A stretch of 50,030 nucleotides of DNA, from positions 1 through 50,030 of the forward strand of contig NIVC01004333.1 of the NCBI GenBank assembly GCA_002269645.1, in the 5' to 3' direction. Source of the DNA: Macrostomum lignano. Its lineage: Eukaryota. The notes beneath the pieces were generated by a model. That model saw nothing but the letters and a program-made list of their open reading frames with translations, did no database searches and was not told the DNA's origin. A program made the translations under genes and the position numbers. Within the stretch, counting starts at the first letter, position 1; each line of letters starts with the position of its first letter. Positions 755 through 42,585 of this stretch are shown piece after piece.

Positions 755-1871
755 GGAGAATGATTTTAAATTAGTAATAAATTTTGTTTTAAACATCTAA
801 CAGACCTGAAACTGTTGAAAGTTCGTGCAATACTGAAAATTTAAATGTGGGAATAATTACTCAGAGGAATCAATCAGCCTATGTTTGTTCGAATTTATTT
901 GCTAATATTTTTATTGTAGGTTCGCACTTACTAGTTGCTGGGCTTTCGGTCTCAAATGTGTCAGGAAAATCAGCCATCGATACTGAGTTCGATCGTTTCT
1001 TCGAATACCAGATAAGGTTTGGTTATATAAGAATTTTTTGTGTAATTAATCTGAAAAGGGGAAATTTGGATTTTTGGATGGAAAGTTAATATATACAATA
1101 AAGCTATTTTGTAATGTAAAACTAATTCTAAGCTAGCTAAGCTAGTAACTGTGTATATATACTTCTATACTACTATATGCACTCGTACTCCTATACACTT
1201 GTAGATACACCTATATATTAACTAGCTAAGTTATACTAAACGTTGGTCAAAATAAAAAAGCAGACATTCGGTGACAAGCGGAAAACTCTTAGTTTCCTTT
1301 GATTTATTTGAATTGAGTTGTTGTACTTGATTAGATAATCGTTCATATTTAAATAAACAATTGAATTAGGAATCAGCAATTTACGAGCCTGTTAGTTTTA
1401 TGTTTACTATAAATAAATGAATCAGAGTAAGAGAAAAATATAATTCAGTGATGCACTACAATCGAGGGCCAGTCGCAGTTTGCGATTTTGATACATTCAA
1501 ATTCAAAAGATCGATTACATTAAATACAACTATAACATTTACTCGTACTCCAATGTTAGAAGTATTTCTTTAACTTCTTTCAATAAAACATTAAAAATCA
1601 GGAAAACTTTGTATTCATTTATAATGAGTTTTAATAATGAAAACATACACTAGGATAACGTTTTTCTCAATCAAAAATTCGGCAACGGTTAGTTATAGCG
1701 AGAGCAATTCTGCTGCTGTTTTTAACTTAGACTGGCTTAAACTGTTTAGAACAGTCACTGTATATCGTCTTTCATTAAACAATAAAAACTAAATTTGTTC
1801 CATCGAGGCACTAATGAAAACACGCTCCTTTTGTAATAATTATGTTATTATACTACGTAGTAATTTATTAC

Positions 1872-2510: not shown

Positions 2511-5500
2511 TTACAACCGCATTTTTTGAAGAAGTTCCGTCACCTGAACCCTGCAGTCATTCGTTGTTTGGTTCCTAGCTGAATTGGCTTGTTGGCGCGA
2601 TTCACGACTGCTTTGAGGAGGCTCATTGACTCGAATCCAAAATTTCTTGCTTGTCTGCACAGACCACCAGGGCAGCTGGCTGATGCCCAGATTAAAAGTG
2701 GCGTTTTGCACCACATAATTAACGATAGGAACCATTGATGCAATGTCGCACTTGTCGGCGAACAGGTCGAGAACAGTGCACAGACACTGGATGAACCGAC
2801 TGCCTCTGTCTGTCATTCGGTAGCTGCTTTCATCCGGCGAAGTCGAGTGAGCGACGATCATGTCAGGAAAGAACGCCAGCTCTGATTTAGGCCATCGACC
2901 AGGGTCTCGACAGTTCTCAAAGATAACCAATTGCTGCTTTCTACTTGTGCGTTTTCCTTTGGAAATTCTCTTTAGAATTTTACTTTCCTTTGCTGATTCG
3001 CCGTCGAAACCAACTACTTCACCGAGACATCCGTGAGACATAAAAGCAACTACGACTGAGCTGCCGTGTCGTGCGTCACTGCAAAACATGTCTAATTCGC
3101 TTTCGATTTCTACTTTGGTGAGATTCGACCTGATGCTCACTGAGTAGCCAAGCCTGAGCAAAGTGTCAGCCATTCGCTGGCAGTCGTACTGACTTCCGAA
3201 CCGAGTAGATAGTTCCTTTTTCTGAAAGACAACGTTGTGAACGATGAGGGCTACAGCCTTGCACTCTTGAGTGTCTAATCCAGGTGCATTCCATTCGCTT
3301 CTGAAAGTCTCTAATCGGAGAGAACCTCTTATTGCTGGTCTCGTCTGCGTGTCGTCACTAACGTCAATTGAAGTCAGATTTGGGTGCGATGAACTCTCTT
3401 CTATATAAAAGTTTTCAAGCCAAGTGATTCTCTTCCTCCAGCCTGGGTTTTCATCATTGACTTTGCAGTGCATTATGCCGTGATGGCAGGAATGGCAGGA
3501 AAAATCTCTACCAACCACAAAGCTGCCATTGAGAGAGATGTTCTTCCTGGGAGATTCCAGCAGGGAGTCCAGAAATTCAATCACGCCGCACCGATTCCTG
3601 CAAACTCTGACAACGCTGAACTTCTCGGGTAGCTCCTCTGGCATCTGAGTGTTCGCGAAATTCTCTTCAGACTCGGACACTTCGCAAAGAATAAGCAAAA
3701 TGCTACTGCTGCACTTTTGAGACGATTGCTGTTTAGAAAGTTCATCGAATATTTCTTGCAAGACGTTGTCGTTGCGATGCGTGCGTACAATTAGATAAAG
3801 GACAACATTTCCTTCAGTTTCTTTTGGAAGCCTGATGGCTGTCTTGATTGAGCTCGAATTGCCATCCGTGTAATCGAAGAGCACTTTGAAGGCTGCATAC
3901 TCCAGAAACATCTGATAGTTTCTGGCCCCATCAAACTGTCCTTCGGTGAGAATCATCACAAACCCTGTTCGATCTGAAATTAAAAAGTGCAAGTACGGCT
4001 GAGCTTTGCTGAGATTATCGAGTTTTATTGACTCATGCAAGCAAAGTTGTTCTTTAATACATGAATCTAATAATGTTTATAACTCAAGCGTATCTTTCTG
4101 AAATACATGTACTTATCAGAAGGTTTTTAGATGAAATAATTCTTCATAGGATAAAAATGTTTGGACATCGCAGAAAAAAACGGAACAGATACCAGTATAA
4201 TTAGAAGTGAGTAGTCTTGCAAAGATGTTGCACATAGCTTTATATGGCTATAACGCATGAATCGGATCTCTACGTCGTAAGAGGTGTTTCTCGATAATTT
4301 AATATGCCACTTACCAATTCTGGCGCTTTTAGGTTCTTTAGATTTCTTCTCTAGACTTTGTTTAGGTTCTTTAGATTTCTTCTGTAGACTTTGTTGCGAA
4401 ACCTCCTGACCGGTAGCTAAAAGCAAAATAGTGCAAATGATTATGCAATAATGATTTCTGCATAGTTGTAACTTTTCAATTTCGACTTTGGCAAAAGTGA
4501 CCAATTTTGACAACAACAAGGAGAGACTGAAGACGACTAGTGAAGTACCTCGACATAAATGTAAACACGGCCAAAGCAGTCAATCACAGATTTGTCATTC
4601 AAGATTGTATTGTTTAAAGGCAACTAGAAGGAACCGTTAGGTCAAAATTTACACCACCAGTGTCGCGCCCTAACACCAAAAAATGTTGGCGGTGGCACAA
4701 GCAGTCTAAGCTACAGAACTACAATGATATTGATCACAAAGAATTTTAAGTCACTTTGACAGTAACAGTGACAGTCATAATTTATCGTGTTGCCGAAGTT
4801 GAAGTCACTTTTGGCAAAGTTCGAATTGAAAAGTATACATGCATTGAGCTAAAAAAAGTGCTCTTACCCTGGATTCCGTCTGTTCCCATGATATAAAAGA
4901 GCTTGCCAGTCTGAATAAACCACTTGGGCACAGATTCATCTAGTCGTTTGTGCTCATTAATTATGGTAATCATAGAGGCCACGTCCTCTGTGTGCCCATA
5001 CTGTCTGAAAGTTTCGCACAGTGTCTGAATAAAAGCGCTGCCCTCTGCTCTTGTCACATCGCTACTAACTGATCGACCGAACACCATGCCGCTGTGTGGA
5101 TGAACCTTGATGGTTGAATCATGCTTGCGAAAATAGGCCTGCAAACCGTCCACAGCATCTTCAATGATCTCATAAGTATTGCTGCTGAAACCATCAGTAA
5201 CAGAGTCTGTCTGCAGTGTTGTGACATCCCACTCGTGCAGAATAAAGAGTCGGGGCTTGGCCTCGAGCTTTTCGCCAATAGCCAAGCTTTTGTACAAATT
5301 CATGACAGTAGAGCTGCTCAGCTGCTGCTGCGTCTGGGACAGCACGACAAGGATGCAGGAGTCACCGTGTTCAGTATCTTCTGAAAAAAGCTCGATCCTT
5401 CTTTTCAAGGCGTCATTGGAGCGGGTTTGCACGTCCGTTACAATGTAGCCAAGATTTTTTAGCATACGCATAACTCTGCTGCGGTCAACTTGCAGAGCAG

Positions 5501-6745
5501 AGTATAGAGAGTCTCCTCGGTCATAGTTGATGATGACCAACGCTCGAGGCTTTTTCGGATTGCGCCGATTCGGATAGATTATTGAGGCATTCTCGCGCAT
5601 CCAATCAGTCGGTTTGTCTTGAGCAGCCTGCTCTGATGCTGCTGGTAAGGCATCAACTTCATCAAGGTTGCTCTTGGGTTCCCTGATAAATTTGAAAATG
5701 TCGCGCAGGAAATCTCCACCGAGCTTTCCTTCTCTATGATACAGAGAAAGGGACTCGTAAGCGAGTGGTAGCTTCAATGCCGTCTCCAGGATAGAAAATA
5801 TACTTTTAGTCTCCCAACTGCACCTGCAGTCATCCAGAAAGCTTCTATAGAAGCCCTGTACGCTTTTAGTTTCCTTAGCCACGACGTAAGCGATAGTTGT
5901 ACACTTGTATTTAAAATTCGCATTCGAAAATTCGTTTGCAAGTTTCGTGTCATCCGGGCTTTCTTCACCAGCGCGACAAAATAATAAACATCTGTTTTGG
6001 CAGTTGGGAAATGTACCCATTGTCATGAAATCTAGGACGTCCTTCATGAAAGCATTGCCAGCTATCACGACTACAATTAGCTGCTGGACCTCGGAATTGT
6101 TCACGAAGTCGGATAGACACGAGCCCAGTTTGCTTTCATACTGCTGTTCCAGGCTCCTCTTTACGTTAAAACTGCACTCTTTTAGAAAGTCGGCGTACTC
6201 ATCTGTCACTGACTCACTGCCAGCGTCGAAGAACAGAGCCAATCTTCGGGAACCTTAAATATCATTATTTGGCAGAGGGTTTTTCATAGTTGGTTATTCA
6301 ACAAGGGATCAGCGGGTTTTCATTGCTATTGTAGCTTAGTTAAGTTCTATAACTCTAGTAGTAAGGGTCGCCGCTCTGAGCAAAGCAGAAATAGCTACAG
6401 GATTCTACTTGAAACTACCAGTCTCAACAGTGTAAAATCTGTACATCGCGTATTTTAGTTCGTTTGCAAGGAAAAATTTTAGCAAAACTTGATTGTAAAA
6501 CTTACATAGTTCATCTTCAAATTTGAAATCATCGGCAGAACTACTTTCAAGAAGAGCTGAAAAGCAATAATAAAGACAACAGTGCGGTAGTGTTAACCTT
6601 CCTTTCGTAAAGTTCAGAAGAATGAGCTTAAAGTTCGACAGGTAAAAACTCTTCTATGGGAATTTAAACTACATTCATCATTCAAAAAAGACCTACTTGA
6701 CGGTCTTAAGCGTATAATTTTTTTCACGTCGGTGACCTCGCTCAT
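2511..6745 (-). CDS. Multi-domain caspase-family protein, about 1016 aa, with four caspase-fold units; join(6745..6697, 6556..6506, 6253..4868, 4416..4315, 3973..2511)
   Basis: ATG at 6745. Donors are gtaggt, gtaagt, gtaaga and gtaagt; acceptors are cttttcag, atttaag, gcttttag and taatttcag. All four introns are phase 1 and the total is 3051 nt (1017 codons) with no internal stop. The last domain has ALIVHN, STRFGSQYD, AFMSHG, IFENCR, DMIVAHST, SSYR and GSRFIQCLC caspase motifs. The two small 5' exons are the least certain part. Confidence 0.8.
2640..3260 (-). other. Catalytically intact-looking caspase (peptidase C14A) domain, unit 4
   Basis: His in SHG (codon 3033-3035) and Cys in ENCRD (codon 2910-2912, the QACRG position). 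The two S1-pocket Arg residues (TRFG and SYR) are retained. Confidence 0.85.
4880..5550 (-). other. Pseudo-caspase domain, unit 2 (dyad lost)
   Basis: PRALVIINY, LKNLGYIV, HGDSCILVVLSQ (in place of SHG), KPRLFILHEWD (in place of QACRG), GSAFIQTLC and PKWFIQTGKLFY. Confidence 0.8.
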
Positions 6746-7939
6746 TAAGACAGGCCGAACGGTGGCGGCTTAGCTGGAAATTTGAAAGTGTAAACGATAA
6801 TTTCGTGGTTGCTTCGCCAAACTTAGCAAGGGAGAGAGGGCTTGCAACGGTTGTATTTAAAATAGCCACACAAATAAAGAGACACTCCAGAATGGGGGCA
6901 AAAGCGTTGCCCGGCCAGATAAATTAACCATAGGCTACAAGACCCCACCAGCAGCAGCAGCAACAGCAGTACAGTGCTGCACTTGGCAGCGGATTCTTTG
7001 GCGGCGGCTGATGCGGCCAGTAAGACCTTGAGTTCATTCGCTACTGATATCATCGGGTGCCCAGTTTAAGCTGCATATTACGCGGGTCTAAAAGGGGGTA
7101 AATCATTTTCCACGTCAATTGAGCCAGTAATTCAAGCCTTAGTGGGGAAAATGTGGCTACGGGATCGAAACAATCTTTTCAAGACAAGATGCTACTATTC
7201 GCGGTAAAACTTGACAGTAGTGTATTTTGGTTGGATCGAAGCAGCAAAGTGCGAACAATTGCTTCAGATTTTGCTTTTATAAAATGAAAAGTTGACGCCT
7301 TTTCACCTCCCCGAAATCACTGGTGCAGGTCTCTTCCTTAAAATGAGAAAGGAGAAGGAAGAGAGGAAAGGGAAGGAGGGAGAGCACGAGGATAGGAGGG
7401 GCGGACAGAAGTGGAGGAAGGAGGAGAGACCATTTCAAGCATTCAGTGAAAATCTCACCCCTGATAGCAACCCTAAATAGTGTAACGGGGAACTGAATTC
7501 ATACCAGTCTCACCAGAGTTAGAATGAGCTCTCAGACAAATCTCAAACTCAAACAAGAGTTTCTGTGACAGAGTTTTGGTATACAATGTTCATTTTAACA
7601 TTGAATAACGTTAGCACTCGATTGCAGCAGGCTCAAAGGTAATTCTTGACAAAAAGACAAAAGCAAAAAAAGGTTGGCATGATCGCAATTTAGTATTTCC
7701 CTTTTTGGTCAAATTACGAGCATACCCCAAACTGTTTCTTTACTTACGAGCGTATGTCTTTTTGTCACAAATTACTTTTGAGCCTTCATCTCCATGTCTC
7801 CTCATATTCCTTGTCTCCCCATTTCCCCTACCACCGTTATCCGCAGCTCCCGATGCACAGACCGCAAAATAACTTTAAAAGCGAACTAAAAAGAAGAGAG
7901 AGAGGGAAAGAGACAAGGACAAAGAGAGGAGAGAGGGGA

Positions 7940-7945
<6 letters not shown>

Positions 7946-8024
<79 letters not shown>
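7946..8024 (+). repeat. (GA)n microsatellite, about 40 units
   Basis: Directly visible. Confidence 0.97.
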
Positions 8025-8035
<11 letters not shown>

Positions 8036-10900: not shown

Positions 10901-13029
10901 CTAACCTGCAGATATTGGACACAACTTTGTTATTGGTCTCGTCATTGTGCGATCACCGACTCTGATTGAGGCGACTCTCACGTGACCGTCCGAACCGCGC
11001 ATGACCTCCAGCACGCGAGCCAGCGGCCAGTGACCCCGAGGCGAGTCCGGGCTCACCAGCAGCGCCACGTCTCCAGGTTGTAGGTCAGGCAGCTCGCGGC
11101 GCCACTTGCTCCGCGGTGCGAGTCCCGGCAGCCACTCGCGCAACCACCGGCGCCAGATCTGCGACACCAGCTGCTGGACGTGACGCCATCTTCTTGAAGG
11201 ACTGCGGGCGATGGCAGCGTCGACCTCCGGTGCAAACTTCCCGCCGACTTGCCCGATGAGGAAGTGATTCGGCGTCAGCGGCACATCATCACTCGGATGC
11301 GCCGTCTGGTACGTCAACGGCCTTGAATTCAGAAGTGCCTCCGCTCCAGCAAACGCGCTTAGCAGCTCCTCATCCGTGACGTCCGCCTCCTTCAGAATTG
11401 CCCAGATTGCCTTCTTCGCTGCTTTGATCATGATTTCGTGCACCCCACCGAAGTGCGGCGCAGCGGGCGGGTTGAAATGCCATCGCAACTGCTGAGAAGC
11501 CGTTCGCTGTTGAAGCTTCTGGGTATCCAAGACGTCGACTAGTTCTCGAAGCTCGCGCGCCGCACCGACGAAGTTCGTGCCGTTGTCCGAGAACAGCTCG
11601 ATCGGTTGGCCTCGTCGACTGATCATCCGCTGTAGAGTCCGTAGGAAGGAATCGGTATCCATGCCGAATGCCACTTCCAGATGTACAGCTCGCGTTGCCA
11701 AGCAGGTGAACAATGCCAGGTACCTTTTCTGCCGAGCCTTGCCACGGCCCTGCTTAGTGATGAATGGACCGGCAAAGTCGACAGCGACACGAGCGAAGGC
11801 ACGAAGCGGCTCCTTGAATCGGCAAGCGGGCAAGGGGGCCATAATCTGGCTGGCTGGTCTGGCTTTCCGTCGGCGACATTCGGCGCACTTTGCTTCCCAA
11901 GACTTAATGGCTTCTCTGGCCGAGACGATCCAAAATCGGTTTGACAGTGCCACCAGAGTTTGGTTTGTGCCTAGATGTTGGACACTTTCGTGGTGATGCT
12001 TCACGATGAGCTCCGTCACGCGGTGTGATCGTGGCAGAATGATAGGAAATCGAGTGCTAAACGGTAGCACATCGGCGAACTTTAGTCTCCCATCAGCGCG
12101 AAGCAGGTCGTTGACGTCGAGCTTCGGGTTCAAGTTAGAAATCACACTGCGTCCCGGCAACTGCTTTCCTGCTCGCAGACAAGCGATCTCTTCCGCAAAC
12201 GTTTCTTGCTGGGCTCTCTGGATGATCTTCGATTCAGCTGCTTCAATCTCTGCTGGTGATAGCTCGCCAGTATCTCGGTGCTCCTTCATCAAACGGCAGT
12301 TGTTAGCGAACCTGGCCACCCAAGCGTGAACACGGACAGCTCTGATCCAGCTGGAGAAGCGCTCTGGCTCCAGTCGATGATTGCGCTCTAGCACATCGGT
12401 GACATACGTTCTCTGGCTCTCACCGGCCGGCGACTGATCCTCGCATCTGCGTCTCTCTTCCACCTGCTCAGGAACCTGCACTTTGTTCTTTGGCCAATTC
12501 TCTGCCTCTTCTAAGAGAAACTGAGGTCCATGCCACCACAACTGGCTAGCCGCCACTGCCTTGATCGATAGTCCTCGAGAGAGCAGATCTGCTGGATTCT
12601 TTTCCGTCGAAACATATCTCCACTGGTTCGGCTCTGTTGAAGCTTGGATCTCGCCCACTCGAGAGGAGACAAACGGCTTGAACATTTTTCCTCGGCCACG
12701 AATCCAGTACAACACGTTTAAGCTGTCAGACCAAAAAACTGCGTCACGAAGCGGCACTTGCAATGACTGCGCGACTTTGCTTGCGAGTTGGACTCCCAGA
12801 ACTGCTGCCATCAGCTCCAACCTCGGTGTACTCATGGTTGTGATTGGAGCTACTCGAGTCTTCGAGATGATAAGTCGAACGGAACGTTCACTGTCAGTTG
12901 CCGTTTCACTTCTCCAGTAGCATACAGCTCCGTAAGCTTTCTCGGATGCGTCAACGAACACGTGCACACTACCCGACAGGGAATTTTCTCCTTCAAGCGC
13001 CCTGGAAAGCCGAATCTCGCTTAAATGCT
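10901..13029 (-). CDS. pol: BEL/Pao pol, RNase H plus integrase portion
   Basis: VHVFVDASEKAYGAV (RNase H), an HHCC finger (HHHESVQH...CAECRR) and DDE motifs (VDFAGP, SDNGTNF, GGVHE). It is separated from the upstream ORF by a 1-nt frameshift near 13032. Confidence 0.93.
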
Positions 13030-16000
13030 TCAGTCAATGCACCAGGCGCTCACTTTTGCACTAAGTTCTGCATTCAGCGGTTCATCCCAATCAAGACCTG
13101 TCTGCCAAAGCTCCTGCATCAGAATCTTCGCCTGCACGACAAATGGAGAGATCAGTCCAAGTGGATCAAAGACGCTCGCTAGCTTCTTCAGCAGACCTCT
13201 TTTTGTGGTCACCTGACGCGACTCGTTTTCATCTTTAAAGGTAAATTCGTCCTGCTCACTCTGCCACGTGACACCCAGTGTCTTGGTGCTTGGTAGTTCT
13301 TTGCTGTCCAAGGTAACTTCGGCTGCACGGTCTTCAGGTGGGATTCTATCGAGCACAGCTCTCGAGTTCGAGACCCACTTGCGCGCGTGCATGCCGGCGC
13401 GCCTCCAGAGCTCACTGAGTTGATCGTACAGCCTGCAGGCGGCTGCCTCGGTGGGCGCAGAGTCCAGGCTGTCATCCATATAGGTAGAGTGCAGTACTGT
13501 CTCGGCCGCCTCTGGAAGCTCACCTTTTGACTTTTCAGCATGGCAGCGGGTAACGAACTGTGCCAAGAACGGAGAGCTGGTGACGCCGAACACCACTCTG
13601 TTGAACTCGTAGACATCCGGCTGCTTTGAAGGATCGGCGTCCCGCCAAAGGAAACTGTGCAGCGGCCTGTCCTTCGGGTCCATCTCGATCTGGAGATACA
13701 TTTCCGCTACGTCGCATGCGATCGCAATCGGGTGTCGGCGGAACCGAAGCAGCACGTCAACCAAATCCCTCTGCAGTTTGGGGCCCTGGCGGATCTGGTC
13801 GTTCAATCTGGCAGCCGATGCATCAAAGACTATTCGCACTTTTGTCGTAGCCTTGTCTGGCCGCAGCACTGGGAAGTGCGGCAGGAAACAGCGGCCTTCA
13901 GTCTCAGCTTGCGACACTTTTCGGATATAACCTTGCTGTTCATACTTTTCAAGGATCTCCTGATACTGCTTGCAGACGTTCATATCCTTAATCAGCCGCT
14001 GTTCGGTGTTCTTTAGTCGCTTCAAGGCCATTGAGAAAGTGCCTGCTGGAGCCAGCCGATCCTTTTTCCATGGAATCCCGATCTGGTAACGGCCCTTCGT
14101 GTACTTTAGCGACGACTTGGCTTGCTGGACGGCTCTCTCCTCATCGGCGGTCAGCGGACTTCGATTGGCACCTTCTGAGACGTTCTCGATCTCCCAAAAC
14201 TGCCGCAGGATCTTAGCCACCTGACCAGATTCGGAATCGCAGCTGAAGAAAGTGGCAGCAAAATGGGCGTTCTGCATCTCAGAATTGTCCTGCTCTGTGC
14301 GACCGATGCACGTCCAACCCAGGGGAGTCAGGCGCGCCTTTGGCTCCAGCGGCTGTCCGACGATTTCTTTGAGAGACACGTGAAGATCCGGGTGATCAGC
14401 ACCAATCAGCAAGTCCACTACTGCAGGCTCACACAGCTTCGGAAACGGCACATTTCTCAGATGAGGCCACTGCTGCGCTTCTTCGTGCCAGTCGACGCCT
14501 TTGAGGGACCCAGTCACGTGATCAGCGGTGAAGGCGACGATCATTGAGCTGGTCTGACCATCCAGACTTTCCAAGCTAAAGCAGACTGGGGCTGTCATGA
14601 AGGTCTCTGTTTGGCCATTGATGACTCCGACTTTCACCTTTTCGAGCGCTCCATGCACTCCAAGCGCTTCTGCTATCCCGATGTTGACGTAGCTCCTGGT
14701 ACTGGCATCGTCGAGCAAGGCATTCACCTTCAGCTTCCGGGACCCGTTCCGTAGGACTACAGGTACCGTTCGTAGCGAGATTGCCGTTTCACCAGCCGAC
14801 AGAAGCGTCACCGGTCCAGTCTTTCCTGAACTGGAAGCGGATTTAGCGTCCTTGGATGCAGTCTGCTTCGCTTCACCAGACTTGGCCAACACTTTTTCTG
14901 CATGAAGCAGGCGATGATGGAACTTTGTGCAGCTGCTGATGCCGCACCGACGACCACGCCGACATTGGCTACCAAGATGTCCTTGGCCCAAGCACCGGAA
15001 ACAACACTTCGAGCTCTGCGCCGCGTCCCAGCGTTTTTCCACCGGAAGCTCCTTGAACTCACTGCAGGACCACAGCTCGTGATCACCTTGACAAACAATG
15101 CAAATCTTTCGCTGTACCTTCTTGTCACTGTCCGTAGTAACGAAAGTCTTTGGTCGCTGCTCTCGCTTTTGACGCTCCTGCTGCATGGTGGCAACGCCCT
15201 GCACAATCTCTGACGCTTCAGTCTGAAACTCTGCTTCTTGCAGCACCCAAATTCTCAGATTTCTAACACTCTCCGGCTTCCGCTGCTCAAAGATCCACCT
15301 CCGGTAGCTGGCAACCATCTGCTCAGGCAACTTTTTCTGCAGCCTCACATACAACATCCCATCTTGAAGCTCTGCCTCTTTACCCGCATCCTCAAGGTTA
15401 ACGACAGCCACATCCAGTAGATTAGCAAAGCTTTTCAGATCCTTGGCGTTTCCATTTCGCACGATCGGGAAGCTGTCCAGCTCTTCCAAGTGCAGAGCAA
15501 GTTGCCTACGCTGTCCACCAAATTCTCTCTCTAATCTCTCTTTTGCAGCTTCATATGCCGCAGCAGAGTGTCCTAGATGTTCTATAACCTTCAAAGCTTC
15601 ACCGCTGAGGTACTGCCTAAGCTGCAGCAACTTGAATTCTGGTGTTGCAGGGGCGCTGTCGATGCACGCAACAAAGGCTGCCTTCCAGTTTTCATACTTC
15701 TGCTTTTCTCCACTAAACGTTGGGATTTCAACACGCTTCAGCATCTTCCACAAATCCTTTGAAAGCTCCTTCGGGTTGGATCCTTTGCTGGACGCAGCAC
15801 TGCCAGAAAGTTTGTGTAACTCACCAGCTGCTTCTTCTTGGTCACCCGCAGCGTTCTCACCGCTTGAGCTCGCGGCAGGAGGAGCTTCTTTGGCGCGCTG
15901 CAATCTCCGGTTTCTGGCGCTTTCGACGCGCTGCATGGCAGCTTGGTAGTCGCGCTCCGTCTCCTCCATTTCGTCTAGTAGGCGCTGTCGCCTCTCGTTG

Positions 16001-16278
16001 TCCTTGGCGTCGGCGTAGCCTTCATGCAGTTCTTCCTGGATGGCGCTGACCAGATCTTGCAGGTCTGACAGAGCGTCACAGGCAACTTGCACTTCGTCAT
16101 CAGAGGCGTGCGTCTTTAACAGCCAAGACAGCTTGTTTTTGCAACGAGTGAACGCTGCTTTTTTTCGGGATTTCTCGAAGCGCAGCTTCTCTAAACGTAG
16201 GGCGCCGGCATCGTCTTGGGCTTCCTGCTGCTGCTGCTCATTGGCGTCGTCACTGTCCATCCTGGTCCTTCGTTTCAC
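13030..16278 (-). CDS. gag-pol: BEL/Pao gag-protease-RT polyprotein
   Basis: IPTFSG gag motif, three Cys/His knuckles (CIVCQGDHELWSC, CFRCLGQGHLGSQC, CGISSCTKFHHRLLH), protease ALLDDAS, and RT motifs KVRIVFDAS and YMDD. Confidence 0.95.
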   Translation of the reverse strand: MKRRTRMDSDDANEQQQQEAQDDAGALRLEKLRFEKSRKKAAFTRCKNKLSWLLKTHASDDEVQVACDALSDLQDLVSAIQEELHEGYADAKDNERRQRLLDEMEETERDYQAAMQRVESARNRRLQRAKEAPPAASSSGENAAGDQEEAAGELHKLSGSAASSKGSNPKELSKDLWKMLKRVEIPTFSGEKQKYENWKAAFVACIDSAPATPEFKLLQLRQYLSGEALKVIEHLGHSAAAYEAAKERLEREFGGQRRQLALHLEELDSFPIVRNGNAKDLKSFANLLDVAVVNLEDAGKEAELQDGMLYVRLQKKLPEQMVASYRRWIFEQRKPESVRNLRIWVLQEAEFQTEASEIVQGVATMQQERQKREQRPKTFVTTDSDKKVQRKICIVCQGDHELWSCSEFKELPVEKRWDAAQSSKCCFRCLGQGHLGSQCRRGRRCGISSCTKFHHRLLHAEKVLAKSGEAKQTASKDAKSASSSGKTGPVTLLSAGETAISLRTVPVVLRNGSRKLKVNALLDDASTRSYVNIGIAEALGVHGALEKVKVGVINGQTETFMTAPVCFSLESLDGQTSSMIVAFTADHVTGSLKGVDWHEEAQQWPHLRNVPFPKLCEPAVVDLLIGADHPDLHVSLKEIVGQPLEPKARLTPLGWTCIGRTEQDNSEMQNAHFAATFFSCDSESGQVAKILRQFWEIENVSEGANRSPLTADEERAVQQAKSSLKYTKGRYQIGIPWKKDRLAPAGTFSMALKRLKNTEQRLIKDMNVCKQYQEILEKYEQQGYIRKVSQAETEGRCFLPHFPVLRPDKATTKVRIVFDASAARLNDQIRQGPKLQRDLVDVLLRFRRHPIAIACDVAEMYLQIEMDPKDRPLHSFLWRDADPSKQPDVYEFNRVVFGVTSSPFLAQFVTRCHAEKSKGELPEAAETVLHSTYMDDSLDSAPTEAAACRLYDQLSELWRRAGMHARKWVSNSRAVLDRIPPEDRAAEVTLDSKELPSTKTLGVTWQSEQDEFTFKDENESRQVTTKRGLLKKLASVFDPLGLISPFVVQAKILMQELWQTGLDWDEPLNAELSAKVSAWCID

Positions 16279-17096: not shown

Positions 17097-19428
17097 TCTC
17101 TATCTTACCAAATGGCAAGCACTGCATGCCATAGACAATTTAGATCTGCGCTGTACACTTCGAATTTCAAAACAGTTGCTTTATTATGCAGAGGCAAGAA
17201 AACACTTTCTCAACAGGAGAAGTGACATCTTTGACTGGAGAATAGTCTATGGCCAACCTAGAAAAAAGGCAAGAGGGAGGGAATACAGGCATGAAAAGTT
17301 AACTGCAAGAATTTTTACTGGTGCCTCCTTAGCTCACCACCCCAACTTACCAAATCTACAATGCAAGCGGTCAGACAGCGACGGCAAGCAGCCAAGCAAG
17401 CCTTGTGAAACTTGGGCCTCGACAGCGAATCGAGCGATGAGTCGAGCGATGACTCATTTTTCACTGCCGAGAGCGAGGGAGAGGACGGTGACGAAAATCA
17501 AGAAGGCAACGATGGATCGGAGGAAGACGATCAGGGAATGATGCACGATGATTGGAGATCAGTAACTCCAGAGACTGATGCTCGAGCTAATTCCCTTCCC
17601 GAGTTCCTCGGGGCAAGCGGAGTCAATCCGGGATTCTCCGTACCTGCTGATGTTGACGACGGCTGGACAGCCATTTTCGAGCAACTTTTACCCGATGAGT
17701 TGCTGCTTCAGATGTGCATGTGGACAAACAAGAGAGCGCAGCTGGATATTGCCAAGTTTCAAGAACACGGAGATGATGAACTGCCTTACGGGCTCAGAAC
17801 GTGGAAGCCCTGCACTGTTTCTGAGATGAAGAAGGTGATCGGCGTTATATTATATACCGGAGTTGTACAGAAACCGGAGGTGACGGCTTACTGGTCCACG
17901 GACCCGTTTTACTTTCATCCCTACCTTCAAAGCATGAAGATGCTTCCTCGCTCGCGGTTTCAACAAATCATGTCATGGCTGCGTTGCTATGACTGTCTTG
18001 ACTTCGACGCTGGTGATCCCTTGTGCAAGATCAGGCCGTTCCTAGACATGGTCCAGACAGTTTGCAAGAACAGCTACCTGCCCGGTCAAAGCATTGCCGT
18101 TGATGAAGCGCTGCTGCTCTATAAAGGGAGGCTGATTTTTAAGCAGTACATGCCCAACAAGAGAGCCAAGTTTGGCATCAAATTGTACTGCCTTGCAGAG
18201 TCTTCTACAGGCTACATGTGGAACTATCTGATACATTCAACCACCATTGCGAATGAACAGTTCGGCAACGATGTGCCGCAGCTCTCAATCAGTGAGAGAG
18301 TCGTCGTAGAACTTTGTCGCGACATTCTGGACCTTGGATATCGGGTCTTTTGCGACAGTTGGTTTTCATCGGTGCGACTGGCCAAGTTCCTTCTGACCAG
18401 AGGAACAACCTTAACTGGGACCGTTCGCAAAGACCGAGGCGTTCCACCGATTCTGCGAGATATGCTCTTGCAACCACCGAGTCATTCCTTTGCCCGACAT
18501 GGTGACATCCTTGCTGTGAAGCTGGTTGACAGGCGAAGCTCAGAAACAAAGACGGTCTATCTGTTGGACTCCGCTTCAACGGCTGCTAGCTCTTTGGTTA
18601 GCCGGGTACTGCGCGGTGGTGTGGAGCAGCAGCTGCTGAAGCCCAACTCGGTTTTGCAATATAATCACAACATGGGAGGTGTGGATCGGATGGATGCCGC
18701 AGCCCAGCCTTACAGCGCATGCCGCCGAACGCACAAATGGTTCGTAAAGTTGGCGGTGTTTCTGCTACAGCAGCTGGTTCGCAACTCCTGGATTGTGTAC
18801 CGACATCTAGGTGGATCCATGAGCTTTCTCAGCTACACTGAAAGGTGTGTAAAGCACTTGATTGAAAGCAGCGGAAATGGTCGATCGAGAGTTAAGCGTC
18901 AGGCTCTTCCCCGTCAGCCAGGCGAAATTCATCACCGGCTGGAAAAGCTACCCGCTACCGCAGCACAAGAACGGCCTACCAAGCGTTGCCGAGTTTGTTA
19001 CCAGCGCAGACTGAAAAAGCGGACCGTCTACTTCTGCCAAGGCTGTGACGGTCAGCCTGGGCTTTGCCTGGAGCCGTGCTTCTTTGAGTGGCACTCGGCT
19101 AACTGATTGCTGGCGCTTTGCTGAAACTGTAATCGAACTGTTGCTAAAATTATTTTCATTCACTTGCATGCAGCTTCATTTGCCCTTATGTTCTCAAGAT
19201 TTACCTTTGTGCATGCAATGTATGTCGTTTTCTATTTGTTTTGTGACACCGACGCAGTATGACAATACAAACAGTTTTTTGGCCTTGGCATGCATAGCAT
19301 TCCATTTGGTTGAGTCAGACAATGATTCTGTCTAAACTCGCTTTCCCATCGACTTCAAATCTGTCTATGGTCAATTGACAGAATGAGCGATGGCATGCAC
19401 AGCATGCCACTGGTAATCATAAGGTTAA
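17097..19428 (+). mobile_element. piggyBac-like DNA transposon
   Basis: The right end is ...AAGG|TTAA (19425-19428). Imperfect subterminal inverted repeats are present (ttaccaaatggcaagcactgcatgccat at 17105 versus the reverse complement of 19390-19416). The left TTAA is not where symmetry predicts. Confidence 0.75.
17361..19106 (+). CDS. piggyBac (PGBD4-like) transposase
   Basis: The DDD triad (IAVDEALL, FCDSWF, GGVDRMD) and the C-terminal Cys-rich domain (CRVC...CQGC...LCLEPCFFEWH) are intact. The in-frame ATG at 17361 is followed by TGA at 17406; the next in-frame ATG is at 17538. Confidence 0.88.
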
Positions 19429-19888: not shown

Positions 19889-20626
19889 ATGAACCGAGAA
19901 AATCAACTGTCAATTCTGTTTTTCGCTCTCCTGGCTGGCGTAACTGGCAGGCTAGTCAGTCTCTTCTATCTGGGCTGCTACGTTGACAAAGAGGCTCGCA
20001 GAGACATAAACGGGCTGAGAAACCTCATCAGCATTGGCTCGTTCCGCGTCACCTCCTGCAATTGCGTCTCCAATGGCAGGGAGATGTCGCCGGAATTCTG
20101 TGCTGCCATCTGCGCTCTTAACGGCTTTGTTTATTTCGGGCTGCAGTACAGCAAGGAGTGCTTCTGCGGCAACTCCTACGGATCGTACGGCAAGGCTAAC
20201 GAGAGCGACTGTAGCTTGAAGTGCTCTGGAAACTCAAATAAGATATGCGGAGGATATTACCGCAATTCGGTGTTCGCTCTGACTTTTACCGGTATGAAGC
20301 TTCTTTCAGCCTAATAGAATTCAGAAATATGCAGTGAATTCATACACAAAAAATGAGCCAAGACAGTTAATTTTCTTTGATAAGGTCTGGACAACAACAC
20401 CTACACGGTGGTGCGGACGTCCAGCCCTCCGGTGACTTCCGACTCGACTTCCGTCTGGCCGGCCGCTGCCCAGTCTGACGCGGACTGCCTGCTTCAGTGC
20501 AGCGCCAGAGCCGACTGCCAGGCCGCCGTTTTCTCCAAGCGGCTGCTCGCCTGCCACCTGCTGGCGTTCGCCTACCCGCCAGCCAGCCTGACCGGACCCG
20601 ACTGGACTCTCTACCAGCGTGGCTGA
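19889..20626 (+). CDS. Secreted WSC-PAN/Apple protein, copy 1 (214 aa); join(19889..20291, 20385..20626)
   Basis: Hydrophobic signal peptide, WSC motif (YLGCY...FC..IC...YFGLQY..ECFCGN...ESDC..KC.G....CGG..RNSVF), a 93-nt phase-1 GT-AG intron, and a PAN-like C-x3-C-x5-C...VF...C-x-L exon. Confidence 0.88.
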
Positions 20627-29382: not shown

Positions 29383-30123
29383 ATGCAACGCACGATTCGC
29401 CTATCGCTTCTGCTCTGCGCCGCCCTGGCCTGCGCCGCTGGCAGGCTGTTGCACTTATCCTATCTGGGCTGCTATGTGGACGTAGAGGGTGCCAGCAGAG
29501 ACATAAACGGGCTGAGTAACTCCAGCCGCATTGGAGAGTTCAGCGTTACTGATCCCATGTGCGTGTGGAATGACAGAGAGATGTCGCCCGAGTTTTGTAG
29601 CGCTATCTGCGCTCTTGGCGGCTTTGCCTACTTCGGGCTGCAGTACAGCAAGCAGTGCTTCTGCGGCAACTCCTACGGATCGTACGGCAAGGCTAACGAG
29701 AGCGACTGTAACATGAAGTGCCCTAGAAACTCAAATAAGATGTGCGGAGGACGTTATCGCAACTCGGTGTTTGCTCTGACTTTTACCGGTATGCACCTCC
29801 TTTCAGCCTAATAGAATTCAGTGACATGCACTGAATTAATGCATAAAAGCTGAGACAAAACAGTTTATTTTTCTTGAAAAGGTCTGGGCAACAACACCTA
29901 CACGGTGGTGCGGCAGTCGAGTACTCCGGTGACTTCCGACTCAACTTCAGCCTGGCCGGCCGCTGCCCAGTCTGACGCTGACTGCCTACTTCAGTGCAGC
30001 GCCAGAGCCGACTGCCAGGCCGCCGTTTTCTCCAAGCGGCTGCTCGCCTGCCACCTCCTGGCGTTCGCCTACCCACCAGCCAGCCTGACCGGACCCGACT
30101 GGACTCTCTACCAGCGTGGCTGA
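29383..30123 (+). CDS. Secreted WSC-PAN/Apple protein, copy 2 (215 aa); join(29383..29788, 29882..30123)
   Basis: Same architecture as copy 1, with a 93-nt intron homologous to the copy 1 intron. Confidence 0.88.
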
Positions 30124-39031: not shown

Positions 39032-39770
39032 ATGCCGCACTCAACAGCAATTTTCATATTCTACTGTGCCTTCCTGATCACAGTGACTTGTGGGTTGGCT
39101 CGCTTTACCTACTTGGGTTGCTACATCGACAGGACTGCGTCAAGAGACTTAAACGGGCTCGAAGAAATGAGCTCAATTGGAGACTTCACCGTCTTATCAG
39201 GCGGATTAGTAAACACTGGGGGTGAAGCTTCGCACGAGTTCTGCGGCGCCATCTGCTCTCTGGGAAGCTTTCCGTACTTCGGACTCCAGAATAGGATAGA
39301 GTGCTTCTGCAGTCACTCTTATGGACACTACGGCAAAGCCAGTGAAAGTGACTGCAGCCACATGTGCAGAGGAAACTCTCTGCAGAAGTGCGGAGGGTCC
39401 AAGAGAAACTCGGTGTTCGCTCTGAGAACTGGTGAGTTACTTGTGTTTAGAGATATCACGGGTTCCATGCTGCTATAGGCTTTGTTTTTCTTAAAAGATG
39501 ACAAAATCGCGTCGTATCTACAATAAATTTTCAGATAAAAACACGTACGTGGTAGCGCAGCAGTCCGAGCCCACGATAACATCTTCAAAGACATCTGTCT
39601 GGCCCACCGCTGCCCATTCTGACGCTGACTGCCTGCTCCAGTGCAGCGCCAGAGCCGACTGCCAGGCCGCCGTTTTCTCCAAGCGGCTGCTCGCCTGCCA
39701 CCTGCTGGCGTTCGCTTACCCACCAGCCAGCCTGACCGGACCCGACTGGACTCTCTACCAGCGTGGCTAA
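39032..39770 (+). CDS. Secreted WSC-PAN/Apple protein, copy 4 (211 aa); join(39032..39431, 39535..39770)
   Basis: Signal peptide, WSC cysteines, a gtgagt...tttcag phase-1 intron and a PAN exon. Confidence 0.87.
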
Positions 39771-41866: not shown

Positions 41867-42585
41867 ATGCTCAAAACAATCGTCTGCATTGTGGGTCTCG
41901 CCGTCCCAGTGCTTTGTGCTGCCCGTAGGGTAACTCAGGTGTCCTACATTGGCTGCTTTGTGGACAACGGAGGCCGAGACCTGAGAGGACTCACCGGAGT
42001 AAGCAGAATCGGGCATTTCAACACCGGCCGCCTCATGCTGAGCAGTGCTAATATGACGCACGAGCTCTGCAGCAGCCTCTGCTCTCTGGGCGGCTTCCCG
42101 TACTTCGGTGTGCAAATCGGTAGAGAGTGCTTCTGCGGCACCTCCTACGGATCTCTGGGAGCTGCTAGCGAGAGCGACTGCAACCGCGTCTGCGCTGGAA
42201 ACGGAGCTTCTAAATGCGGTGGCACGTGGCGCAACTCTGTGTTTGCTTTGACCTATCCAAGTGAGTCTGCCTTCTTCATTACGACATTTTGTTGGGCTTT
42301 TCAAACCAAAGTTCGGCCAATTTTGTAAAATCTTATGTACATTTTGTAGATAGTAAGTATTTTGAGCCGTCGCAGAGGCCCAACCAGACGGTGGAGTCCA
42401 CCCAGAGCACTTATTGGACCAGCGCTACCCGATCCGACGTCGAGTGCATGGGGCTGTGCGAGGCCTCAGCTGACTGCCAGGCTGTGATTTACTCTGGCCA
42501 GCAGCGCCTGTGCCACTTGCTGAGATTCGCCTACCCGCCTGCCAGTCTGAGCAGCACCGATGGAGACTTCTTTGAGCGCGGCTGA
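41867..42585 (+). CDS. Secreted WSC-PAN/Apple protein, copy 5 (209 aa); join(41867..42260, 42350..42585)
   Basis: Signal peptide MLKTIVCIVGLAVPVLCA, a WSC domain, an 89-nt phase-1 intron and a divergent PAN exon. Confidence 0.87.

Follow-up and report, generated by a model that had tools for sequence, protein, structure and literature searches.

Caspases are the textbook case of enzymes that dimerise on death-fold platforms to become active. To be active, a caspase domain has to pair with a second domain of caspase fold, which is how cFLIP(L) activates caspase-8. Separase belongs to another clan CD family (C50), carries a large helical region at its N-terminus and is under the control of securin; within its chain, the active caspase-like domain is packed against an inactive one. 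Mammalian caspase-16 joins a catalytically dead caspase-like prodomain, which arose by exon duplication, to an active caspase; an intramolecular pseudo-dimer has been proposed, and the duplicated domain was termed "unique among caspases known so far" (Eckhart et al., 2025; PMC12198278). Four Mytilus coruscus caspases have two CASc domains (PMC10967218), and in some lophotrochozoan caspases CARD or DED is replaced, by a TIR domain in Metaphire and by a kinase-like domain in Macrostomum lignano (PMC11463336). Here we describe a gene on the minus strand of M. lignano contig NIVC01004333.1 (assembly GCA_002269645.1; positions 1 to 50,030, the 50,030-nucleotide stretch called the window below). The best explanation of the whole, which we hold at a probability of roughly 0.6, is that this gene encodes a four-domain caspase-family chain with two degenerate folds, named X, in which the non-catalytic domains may serve as a built-in partner.

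The chain runs X1 - C2 - Lys-rich linker - X3 - C4. It consists of two copies of an X + caspase module, and only C4 keeps both the His and the Cys. The four units are:

5739..6251, minus strand: unit 1 (X1), residues 35-205, read as a compact degenerate caspase-like domain
4868..5552, minus strand: unit 2 (C2), residues ~268-496, a pseudo-caspase
3462..3971, minus strand: unit 3 (X3), residues 531-700, read as a compact degenerate caspase-like domain
2607..3266, minus strand: unit 4 (C4), residues 766-985, a caspase domain

Caspase-16 is the closest described analogue. Both proteins place a dead N-terminal caspase-like domain before an active caspase in a single chain without CARD or DED, an arrangement found in X3-C4 and in two shorter paralogues, P0010 and P0061. 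The likeness is an architectural analogy only. Caspase-16 has two domains, whereas the flatworm protein has four, module duplication having apparently added a second, conventional pseudo-caspase; and the flatworm X, at ~170 aa, without a Pfam hit and in a family of its own, is far more degenerate than the caspase-16 prodomain. Orthology is excluded by taxon range, since caspase-16 is mammalian and the flatworm family was found only in M. lignano. The protein also resembles the cFLIP(L)/caspase-8 pair, in which a caspase fold lacking His and Cys pairs with one active caspase domain. However, cFLIP and caspase-8 are separate polypeptides joined by tandem DEDs at the death-inducing signalling complex (DISC), while the flatworm protein is one chain without a death fold.

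Predicted chains with two Peptidase_C14 domains also occur in Betta splendens (XP_055364141.1), Notodromas monacha (CAD7275743.1) and, as a drICE-like protein, Lycorma. Unlike the flatworm chain, the Betta and Notodromas proteins have two canonical domains with a QACRG-type Cys motif and contain no cryptic X domains; some predicted two-caspase-domain proteins may be model fusions of tandem genes. The premise of an earlier, sequence-only reading of this DNA (the initial annotation), that animal caspases carry one protease domain each, is outdated by the pseudo-caspase prodomain of caspase-16 (PMC12198278) and the paired CASc domains of Mytilus (PMC10967218). The novelty that it claimed for four tandem folds stands in part: chains with several caspase domains were already known from these two papers, but we came across no account of either a chain with four caspase-derived folds or the X domain; term searches in the main text of PMC11463336 turned up nothing on multiple or tandem caspase domains, and that survey does not mention the X + caspase family. 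What is new is the reading of the domains, which has moderately good support.

In the DNA, the gene appears as two minus-strand open reading frames (ORFs), one of 486 aa (4782..6242) and one of 509 aa (2511..4040). Five minus-strand exons, running from 6745 to 2511, join into a 3051-nt frame that encodes 1016 aa and has one terminal stop. All junctions were checked in the DNA, and every intron of the five-exon model has a canonical GT donor and AG acceptor. The exons, preceded by a probable non-coding one, are:

6970..7041, minus strand: probable 5′ untranslated region (UTR) exon of the same transcript, corresponding to the N-terminus of the partial models P0003 and P0162
6697..6745, minus strand: coding exon 1, with the ATG at 6745-6743, encoding residues 1-16 plus 1 nt, GT donor at 6696
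6506..6556, minus strand: coding exon 2, 51 nt, phase 1 to phase 1, with an AG acceptor and a GTAAGT donor; kept in two near-identical loci, L001 and L002
4868..6253, minus strand: coding exon 3, 1386 nt, phase 1 to phase 1, containing the entire first module (unit 1 + unit 2)
4315..4416, minus strand: coding exon 4, a 102-nt Lys/Ser-rich linker micro-exon, phase 1 to phase 1
2511..3973, minus strand: coding exon 5, starting in phase 1 and containing the entire second module (unit 3 + unit 4), the C-terminal tail and the stop

The N-terminus encoded by exon 1 matches that of the models P0161, P0001 and P0159. Read in a non-coding frame, 7041-6970 and 6773-6696 match the N-terminus of P0003 and P0162 at 100%. 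The exon 4 linker contains an 11-aa tandem repeat.

The spliced 1016-aa protein is residue-for-residue 100% identical to P0161 (UniRef100_A0A1I8GDU4, UniProt A0A1I8GDU4, Macrostomum lignano). A protein-collection search returned an M. lignano 1016-aa 'CASPASE_P20 domain-containing protein' that covers 100% of the query at 97% identity. All four introns recur in P0159, which agrees with the spliced protein over residues 1-986 and departs from it solely in an alternative 3′ end, while P0002 is an isoform model that lacks the 102-nt exon 4 and is still in frame. The NCBI model P0158 extends from Met1 through units 1 and 2 and the micro-exon into unit 3 and so crosses the junction between the two ORFs. 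Thus, the five-exon gene model is not new but is in UniProt already, as an uncharacterised protein, and the gene was not 'hidden' as the initial annotation had put it. What that annotation said of its structure held up well. The junctions 4868/4416 and 4315/3973 are exactly as claimed, GT-AG and in frame; the predicted length of ~1016 aa is 1016 aa; and the union of the 486-aa and 509-aa ORFs in one chain agrees with the identical UniProt model and with intron positions and phases kept in a paralogue at 34% identity. The motifs that it quoted are also present, with SHG (842-844) and ENCRD (882-886) in unit 4. Unit 2 reads SQT and HEWD at the equivalent places.

An internal GT donor at ~2601 (minus strand), in the last exon after ...EPPQSSR, is used by P0159 and P0162. 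P0159 splices from this donor to its alternative tail, which has no exact match in the window and resembles only a dispersed repeat, and P0162 splices from it to exon 3 of a downstream paralogue. These two models are either real read-through isoforms or assembly chimeras.

Unit 4 is predicted from its sequence to be a caspase (MEROPS C14A) with an apparently active site. It matches caspase-3 (phmmer E 1e-12, residues 743-951), the family's unit-4 profile matches caspases at E 3e-57, and PF00656 is precomputed for P0001. The catalytic dyad, His843 (MSHGC; 3033-3035) and Cys884 (ENCRD; 2910-2912), aligns to that of caspase-3. In caspases, the S1 triad that binds the P1 Asp consists of Arg179, Gln283 and Arg341 (caspase-1 numbering). 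Arg787 and Arg915 of unit 4 align with the two S1 arginines, and Glu882 (2916-2918) takes the place of the Gln, which is present in L001, L002 and all six aligned paralogues. The columns of H843, C884, R787, Q882 and R915 are invariant in the six paralogues, in keeping with the dyad-bearing caspase domain that had been proposed here. The active-site pentapeptide is atypical, reading ENCRD in the window and QNCLD in L001, L002 and P0001 (~98% identical DNA), and 7 of the 12-13 non-synonymous differences in unit 4 fall around the active site, at residues 870-900. The pentapeptide difference and the clustered changes suggest relaxed or diversifying selection on the active site.

Unit 2, judged by comparison with its relatives, is a genuine, long-retained pseudo-caspase. 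It matches CED-3 (phmmer E 1.3e-6) and unit 4 (BLASTP E 3e-9), it shares with unit 4 a family-specific C-terminal motif, (L/V)P.W.(V/I)QT.K.F, and the family's unit-2 profile aligns with caspases at a probability of 99.4% (E 4e-21). These matches bear out the earlier call of a caspase fold without His and Cys. The dyad His is replaced by Gln (LSQTQ) and the Cys by Trp (HEWD); in all paralogues, unit 2 lacks the dyad, with Gln, Leu or Glu at the His position and Trp or Tyr at the Cys position. The region before unit 2 is an X domain with a predicted alpha/beta fold, which agrees with the stated absence of a death-fold prodomain. It is neither a tandem DED nor a six-helix death fold, and the protein is not an orthologue of cFLIP.

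The riskiest claim of the initial annotation was that units 1 and 3 are degenerate caspase folds. Single-sequence PDB searches with unit 1 and unit 3 alone gave no match at E<=10, BLASTP of unit 1 against unit 3 detected no similarity, and NCBIfam and PADLOC scans of the X domains yielded nothing meaningful. The homology of units 1 and 3 is visible only with profiles built from paralogues. Hidden Markov models of unit 1 match unit 3 regions and vice versa, and the two profiles align with each other over 143 columns (hhalign 98%, E 1.9e-13); we named the shared domain X. The joint X profile aligns in register with a 57-sequence caspase alignment over 151 columns (score 35.2, E 7e-5), compared with scores of 12.5 for the reversed alignment and at most 18.2 for 30 column shuffles. 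The first strands of X and of the caspases coincide, as do the first helices, and the hydrophobic strand 3 of X is matched to the caspase strand with SHG at its end. The joint profile scores 38.5 (E 3.3e-5) when aligned with unit 4 of the family itself, and the unit-3 profile alone matches caspases at E ~1e-4.

In this alignment the X motif 'LLxxC' is paired with the caspase 'FxQAC', which places the X Cys on the catalytic Cys column. That residue is C126 (FCRAG) in unit 1 and C626 (LCEVS) in unit 3, and it is kept in 7 of 8 distinct aligned X domains (the exception is unit 3 of P0006) as well as in the P0061 motif. Unit 1 has Gly at the catalytic His position; unit 3 has a His one position off the His column, which is absent in P0010. 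With the dyad incomplete in both, the X domains would be at best non-catalytic relics.

AlphaFold2 models of the two units, built from alignments of X domains only (7 sequences), point to the same fold. The unit 3 model (predicted local distance difference test score (pLDDT) 70.5, predicted template modelling score (pTM) 0.75) has the order b1 a1 b2 a2 b3 a3 b4 (short helix) b5 a4 ... b6. Its 50 top Foldseek matches in the PDB are almost all caspase-3/6/7/8/9, CED-3, drICE and MALT1, the best with E 1.3e-3, probability ~1.0 and query TM-scores (TMq) of up to 0.53. The unit 1 model (pLDDT 62.7) has the order b1 a1 b2 a2 b3 a3 b4 h b5 a4 a5 b6; its top 14 matches are caspases and the cFLIP(L) protease-like domain (3h13, 3h11), at TMq 0.50-0.56, with CED-3 the best (E 3.9e-5). 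The element order of both models fits that of caspases (b1 a1 b2 a2 b3 a3 b4 / b5 a4 a5 b6), although strand 6 is of low confidence. The riskiest claim has thus gained ground, through the alignment of X1 with X3 at 98% probability, the joint profile (E 3e-5 to 7e-5) and Foldseek lists that are dominated by caspases, albeit for models of moderate confidence. We consider it likely, with good confidence, that X is a compact, degenerate, caspase-derived fold. X1 and X3 are best read as very old, very diverged caspase-fold copies of ~170 aa, with a relic Cys and without the His or the long substrate-binding loops. The X domain family is missed by standard domain databases.

Unit 3 is followed by a Cys/His-rich stretch, FSCHSCHHGIMHC (3462-3540, minus strand; residues ~675-700), which is not kept in P0005 or P0006. 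At the same place, the P0009/P0155 paralogue has a longer Cys-rich, zinc-finger-like insert.

Diverged relatives were collected by an exhaustive phmmer search with P0001, which is 97% identical to the spliced protein, against 1.84 billion representatives. This search found no orthologue outside M. lignano, as every looked-up hit that matched beyond the caspase domains came from this species; a word-indexed profile search with X returned P0153 only. The relatives differ in the units that they contain:

P0006, 1017 aa: units 1-4
P0005, 838 aa: units 2-4
P0007, 691 aa: units 1, 2 and 4 (X + pseudo-caspase + active caspase)
P0010, 580 aa: a unit-3-like domain + one active caspase
P0061, 600 aa: the same composition as P0010

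At 34% identity, the P0006 gene has an exon for units 1+2, a small linker exon and an exon for units 3+4, with all introns in phase 1; the small exon is a phase-1 micro-exon equivalent to exon 4. The single X + caspase module of P0010 is encoded by one exon, which follows a phase-1 intron. In paralogues that are 34-43% identical, conservation is highest in unit 4, followed by units 3 and 2 and then unit 1, and most linkers are lower and more variable. Units 1 to 3 are 22-41% identical in these paralogues, compared with 15-36% for linkers. Since the pseudo-domains are conserved above most linkers, the pattern argues that they are constrained.

Could X1-C2 and X3-C4 be two independent genes, wrongly fused by assembly or annotation? 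Regional M. lignano models do include evident read-through or chimeric products, such as P0162 (1821 aa) and the alternative tail of P0159, and the NCBI models of the near-identical loci are fragmentary (P0153, 162 aa; P0157, 150 aa). However, identical junctions recur in at least 5 models, among them P0158, and the phase-1 linker micro-exon with both its flanking phase-1 introns is kept in the diverged P0006 gene, while P0002, which skips it, stays in frame. The acceptor of exon 5 is strong, and the earliest Met in frame within this exon, residue 536, already falls in strand 1 of unit 3. The full 3051-nt frame is also kept in three copies: L001 and L002, in the NCBI assembly, are 97.8% identical to the gene over the whole 4.7 kb and retain all splice sites and an intact ORF. 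Two separate mRNAs are unlikely because the P0006 layout and phases are the same and L001 and L002 keep splice sites and frame, and we regard the wrong-fusion account as highly improbable. The same copies bear on another account, which we think improbable, though less so: that the gene is a recently duplicated, decaying family member whose pseudo-domains are roleless relics and whose C4 is losing activity. This account draws on Glu882 in place of the otherwise invariant S1 Gln, on the clustered changes at residues 870-900, on an exon divergence (1.8-2.0%) barely under that of introns (2.0-2.6%) and on the unit 1 substitutions (5 non-synonymous, 1 synonymous). Yet per-unit counts are too small for conclusions and too low to show relaxation. 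The three copies contain no stop, frameshift or exon indel, as the 11-18 indel columns between the window copy and L001 or L002 are all intronic, with 0 in 3051 exon columns; the ratio of non-synonymous to synonymous substitution rates (dN/dS) between them is 0.38-0.48 overall and 0.22-0.42 for units 3 and 4; and the four-unit layout, with both pseudo-domains, is kept in the diverged paralogues.

A different challenge concerns only units 1 and 3, which might form a lineage-specific flavodoxin-like or TIR-type alpha/beta prodomain. The protein would then have two caspase domains, one pseudo and one active, along with two copies of a novel or TIR-like adaptor, and the caspase likeness of X would reflect topology only. 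Caspase and TIR/flavodoxin-like folds share the strand order 21345 for the first five strands. In the PDB profile search, X scored best against a designed Rossmann 2x3 fold (E 0.0033); the Foldseek matches of unit 1 include CheY-like receivers from rank 15 onwards; and hhalign probabilities for X against caspases are only 63-72%. TIR-domain caspases have been reported in the annelid Metaphire vulgaris (PMC11463336), and UniProt applies the automatic name 'TIR domain-containing protein' to P0008 and P0163, two fragment models of a P0006-type paralogue. On the other side, no TIR chain came up at E<=10 when the X profile was searched against the PDB, whereas Spodoptera caspase-1 (Sf-caspase-1) was listed at E 0.2, aligned in the correct register. 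In hhalign, X scored 15.2 (E 0.13) against a TIR profile made from seven approximate sequences, the level of the shuffles, compared with 35-38 for caspase profiles. Neither Foldseek search has a TIR domain in its top 50, and the CheY-like receivers reach a TMq of ~0.33, compared with 0.5-0.56 for caspases. The predicted a4-a5-b6 after b5 and the conserved X Cys on the catalytic column also fit caspases. We consider a flavodoxin-like or TIR-type prodomain unlikely. A TIR identity as such was rejected, as the PDB profile search, hhalign against the TIR profile and Foldseek were all without TIR signal.

Several points weigh against a four-domain caspase-family chain with X as a caspase-derived fold. 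Unit 1 alone gives no significant caspase signal (E 0.19-0.43) and is tied to caspases only via unit 3, whose members contribute most of the X-to-caspase signal. The statistics that link X to caspases are moderate (the hhalign probabilities above, and Foldseek E 4e-5 to 1e-2), and the X models, with a pLDDT of 63-70 from 7-sequence alignments, are of moderate confidence only. Convergence of the X and caspase folds is possible, given the shared 21345 order. The TIR name carried by P0008 and P0163 also counts here, although none of our searches reproduced a TIR signal behind it; it is possible that the name stems from a local 48-column match of a generic caspase profile to TIR box 1. In C4, Glu882 and the variable pentapeptide could reflect relaxed constraint on catalysis, and the linker between the large and small subunit regions is only ~13 residues. 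The intramolecular dimer is pure inference, and a literature search for the gene identifiers returned none, with no expression or functional reports found.

A four-domain caspase-family chain suggests the following model of its origin. An ancestral caspase would have gained a duplicated, degenerating caspase domain as a prodomain, as in mammalian caspase-16, and the entire module exon would then have been duplicated in tandem. Duplication of a module exon fits because each module is one exon bounded by phase-1 introns and the P0010 module is a single exon; P0010 and P0061 are single-module paralogues. In the protein, the non-catalytic domains may supply the partner of C4 within the chain, as cFLIP(L) does for caspase-8, giving a single-active-site protease that would need no CARD/DED platform. 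By analogy with cFLIP(L) and caspase-16, activation through an intramolecular pseudo-dimer is plausible. The initial annotation had proposed intramolecular dimers or a sensor-effector fusion; both are plausible ideas, and its term 'polyprotein' would be a provisional one. Alternatively, control could be exerted through a conformational change or through cleavage of disordered linkers, for which there is one candidate:

5652..5663, minus strand: canonical DEVD tetrapeptide, residues 231-234, a possible site of cleavage by caspases; the linker that contains it joins units 1 and 2 and is predicted to be disordered

The expected count of this motif from composition is 0.019, and the linker has a pLDDT of <50. 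The DEVD is unchanged in the window copy, L001 and L002 and is not in the diverged paralogues. Cleavage at this site may be a regulatory step. A more specific arrangement, which we put forward tentatively and regard as doubtful, is a single-chain mimic of the caspase dimer of dimers (X1:C2 + X3:C4, or C2:C4 flanked by X) with one active site of four.

The other features of the window lie outside the gene. The nearest is part of a tandem array:

921..977, minus strand: first coding exon of the next gene of the array, which is a four-unit paralogue of the P0006 type and continues beyond the window (tblastn with P0006 residues 1-19, 74% identity)

This exon reads ATG GCT GAT TTT ..., encoding the peptide MADFPDTFETESPAT..., followed by a GTAAGT donor, and lies 1.5 kb downstream of the stop codon. 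Contig NIVC01000896.1 (L003) shows the same tandem gene order, and the model P0162 reads through both tandem genes. Elsewhere, a 564-aa ORF (17412-19106, plus strand) encodes a piggyBac-type transposase (match to piggyBat transposase, E 3.9e-51). Two very long ORFs of 688 and 1082 aa (10901-16278, minus strand) occupy a block rich in GC (0.50-0.54). A PDB sequence search with the 1082-aa ORF gave no match at E<=0.001, and the two ORFs may represent a large exon or a mobile element. At ~7880-8030, a long (GA)n/(TC)n microsatellite gives rise to spurious poly-LS and poly-RE ORFs on both strands. A dispersed repeat (minus strand) occurs at ~39065-39310, 19913-20167, 29404-29664 and 41921-42136; when translated, it shares 31-38% identity with the alternative C-terminal tail of P0159.

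The four-domain caspase is apparently confined to one flatworm lineage and has no bearing on a long-standing open question. If the chain does mimic a dimer of dimers, partner supply, allostery and cleavage at DEVD231-234 would be wholly intramolecular and independent of death-fold platforms, and X would be an unrecognised minimal caspase-derived regulatory fold. With four caspase-derived domains, one of them catalytic, and no CARD or DED, the protein would extend the idea that caspase-16 introduced. M. lignano supports RNA interference and transgenesis, and its four-domain caspase may offer a tractable system for the regulation of a caspase in cis by pseudo-proteases.

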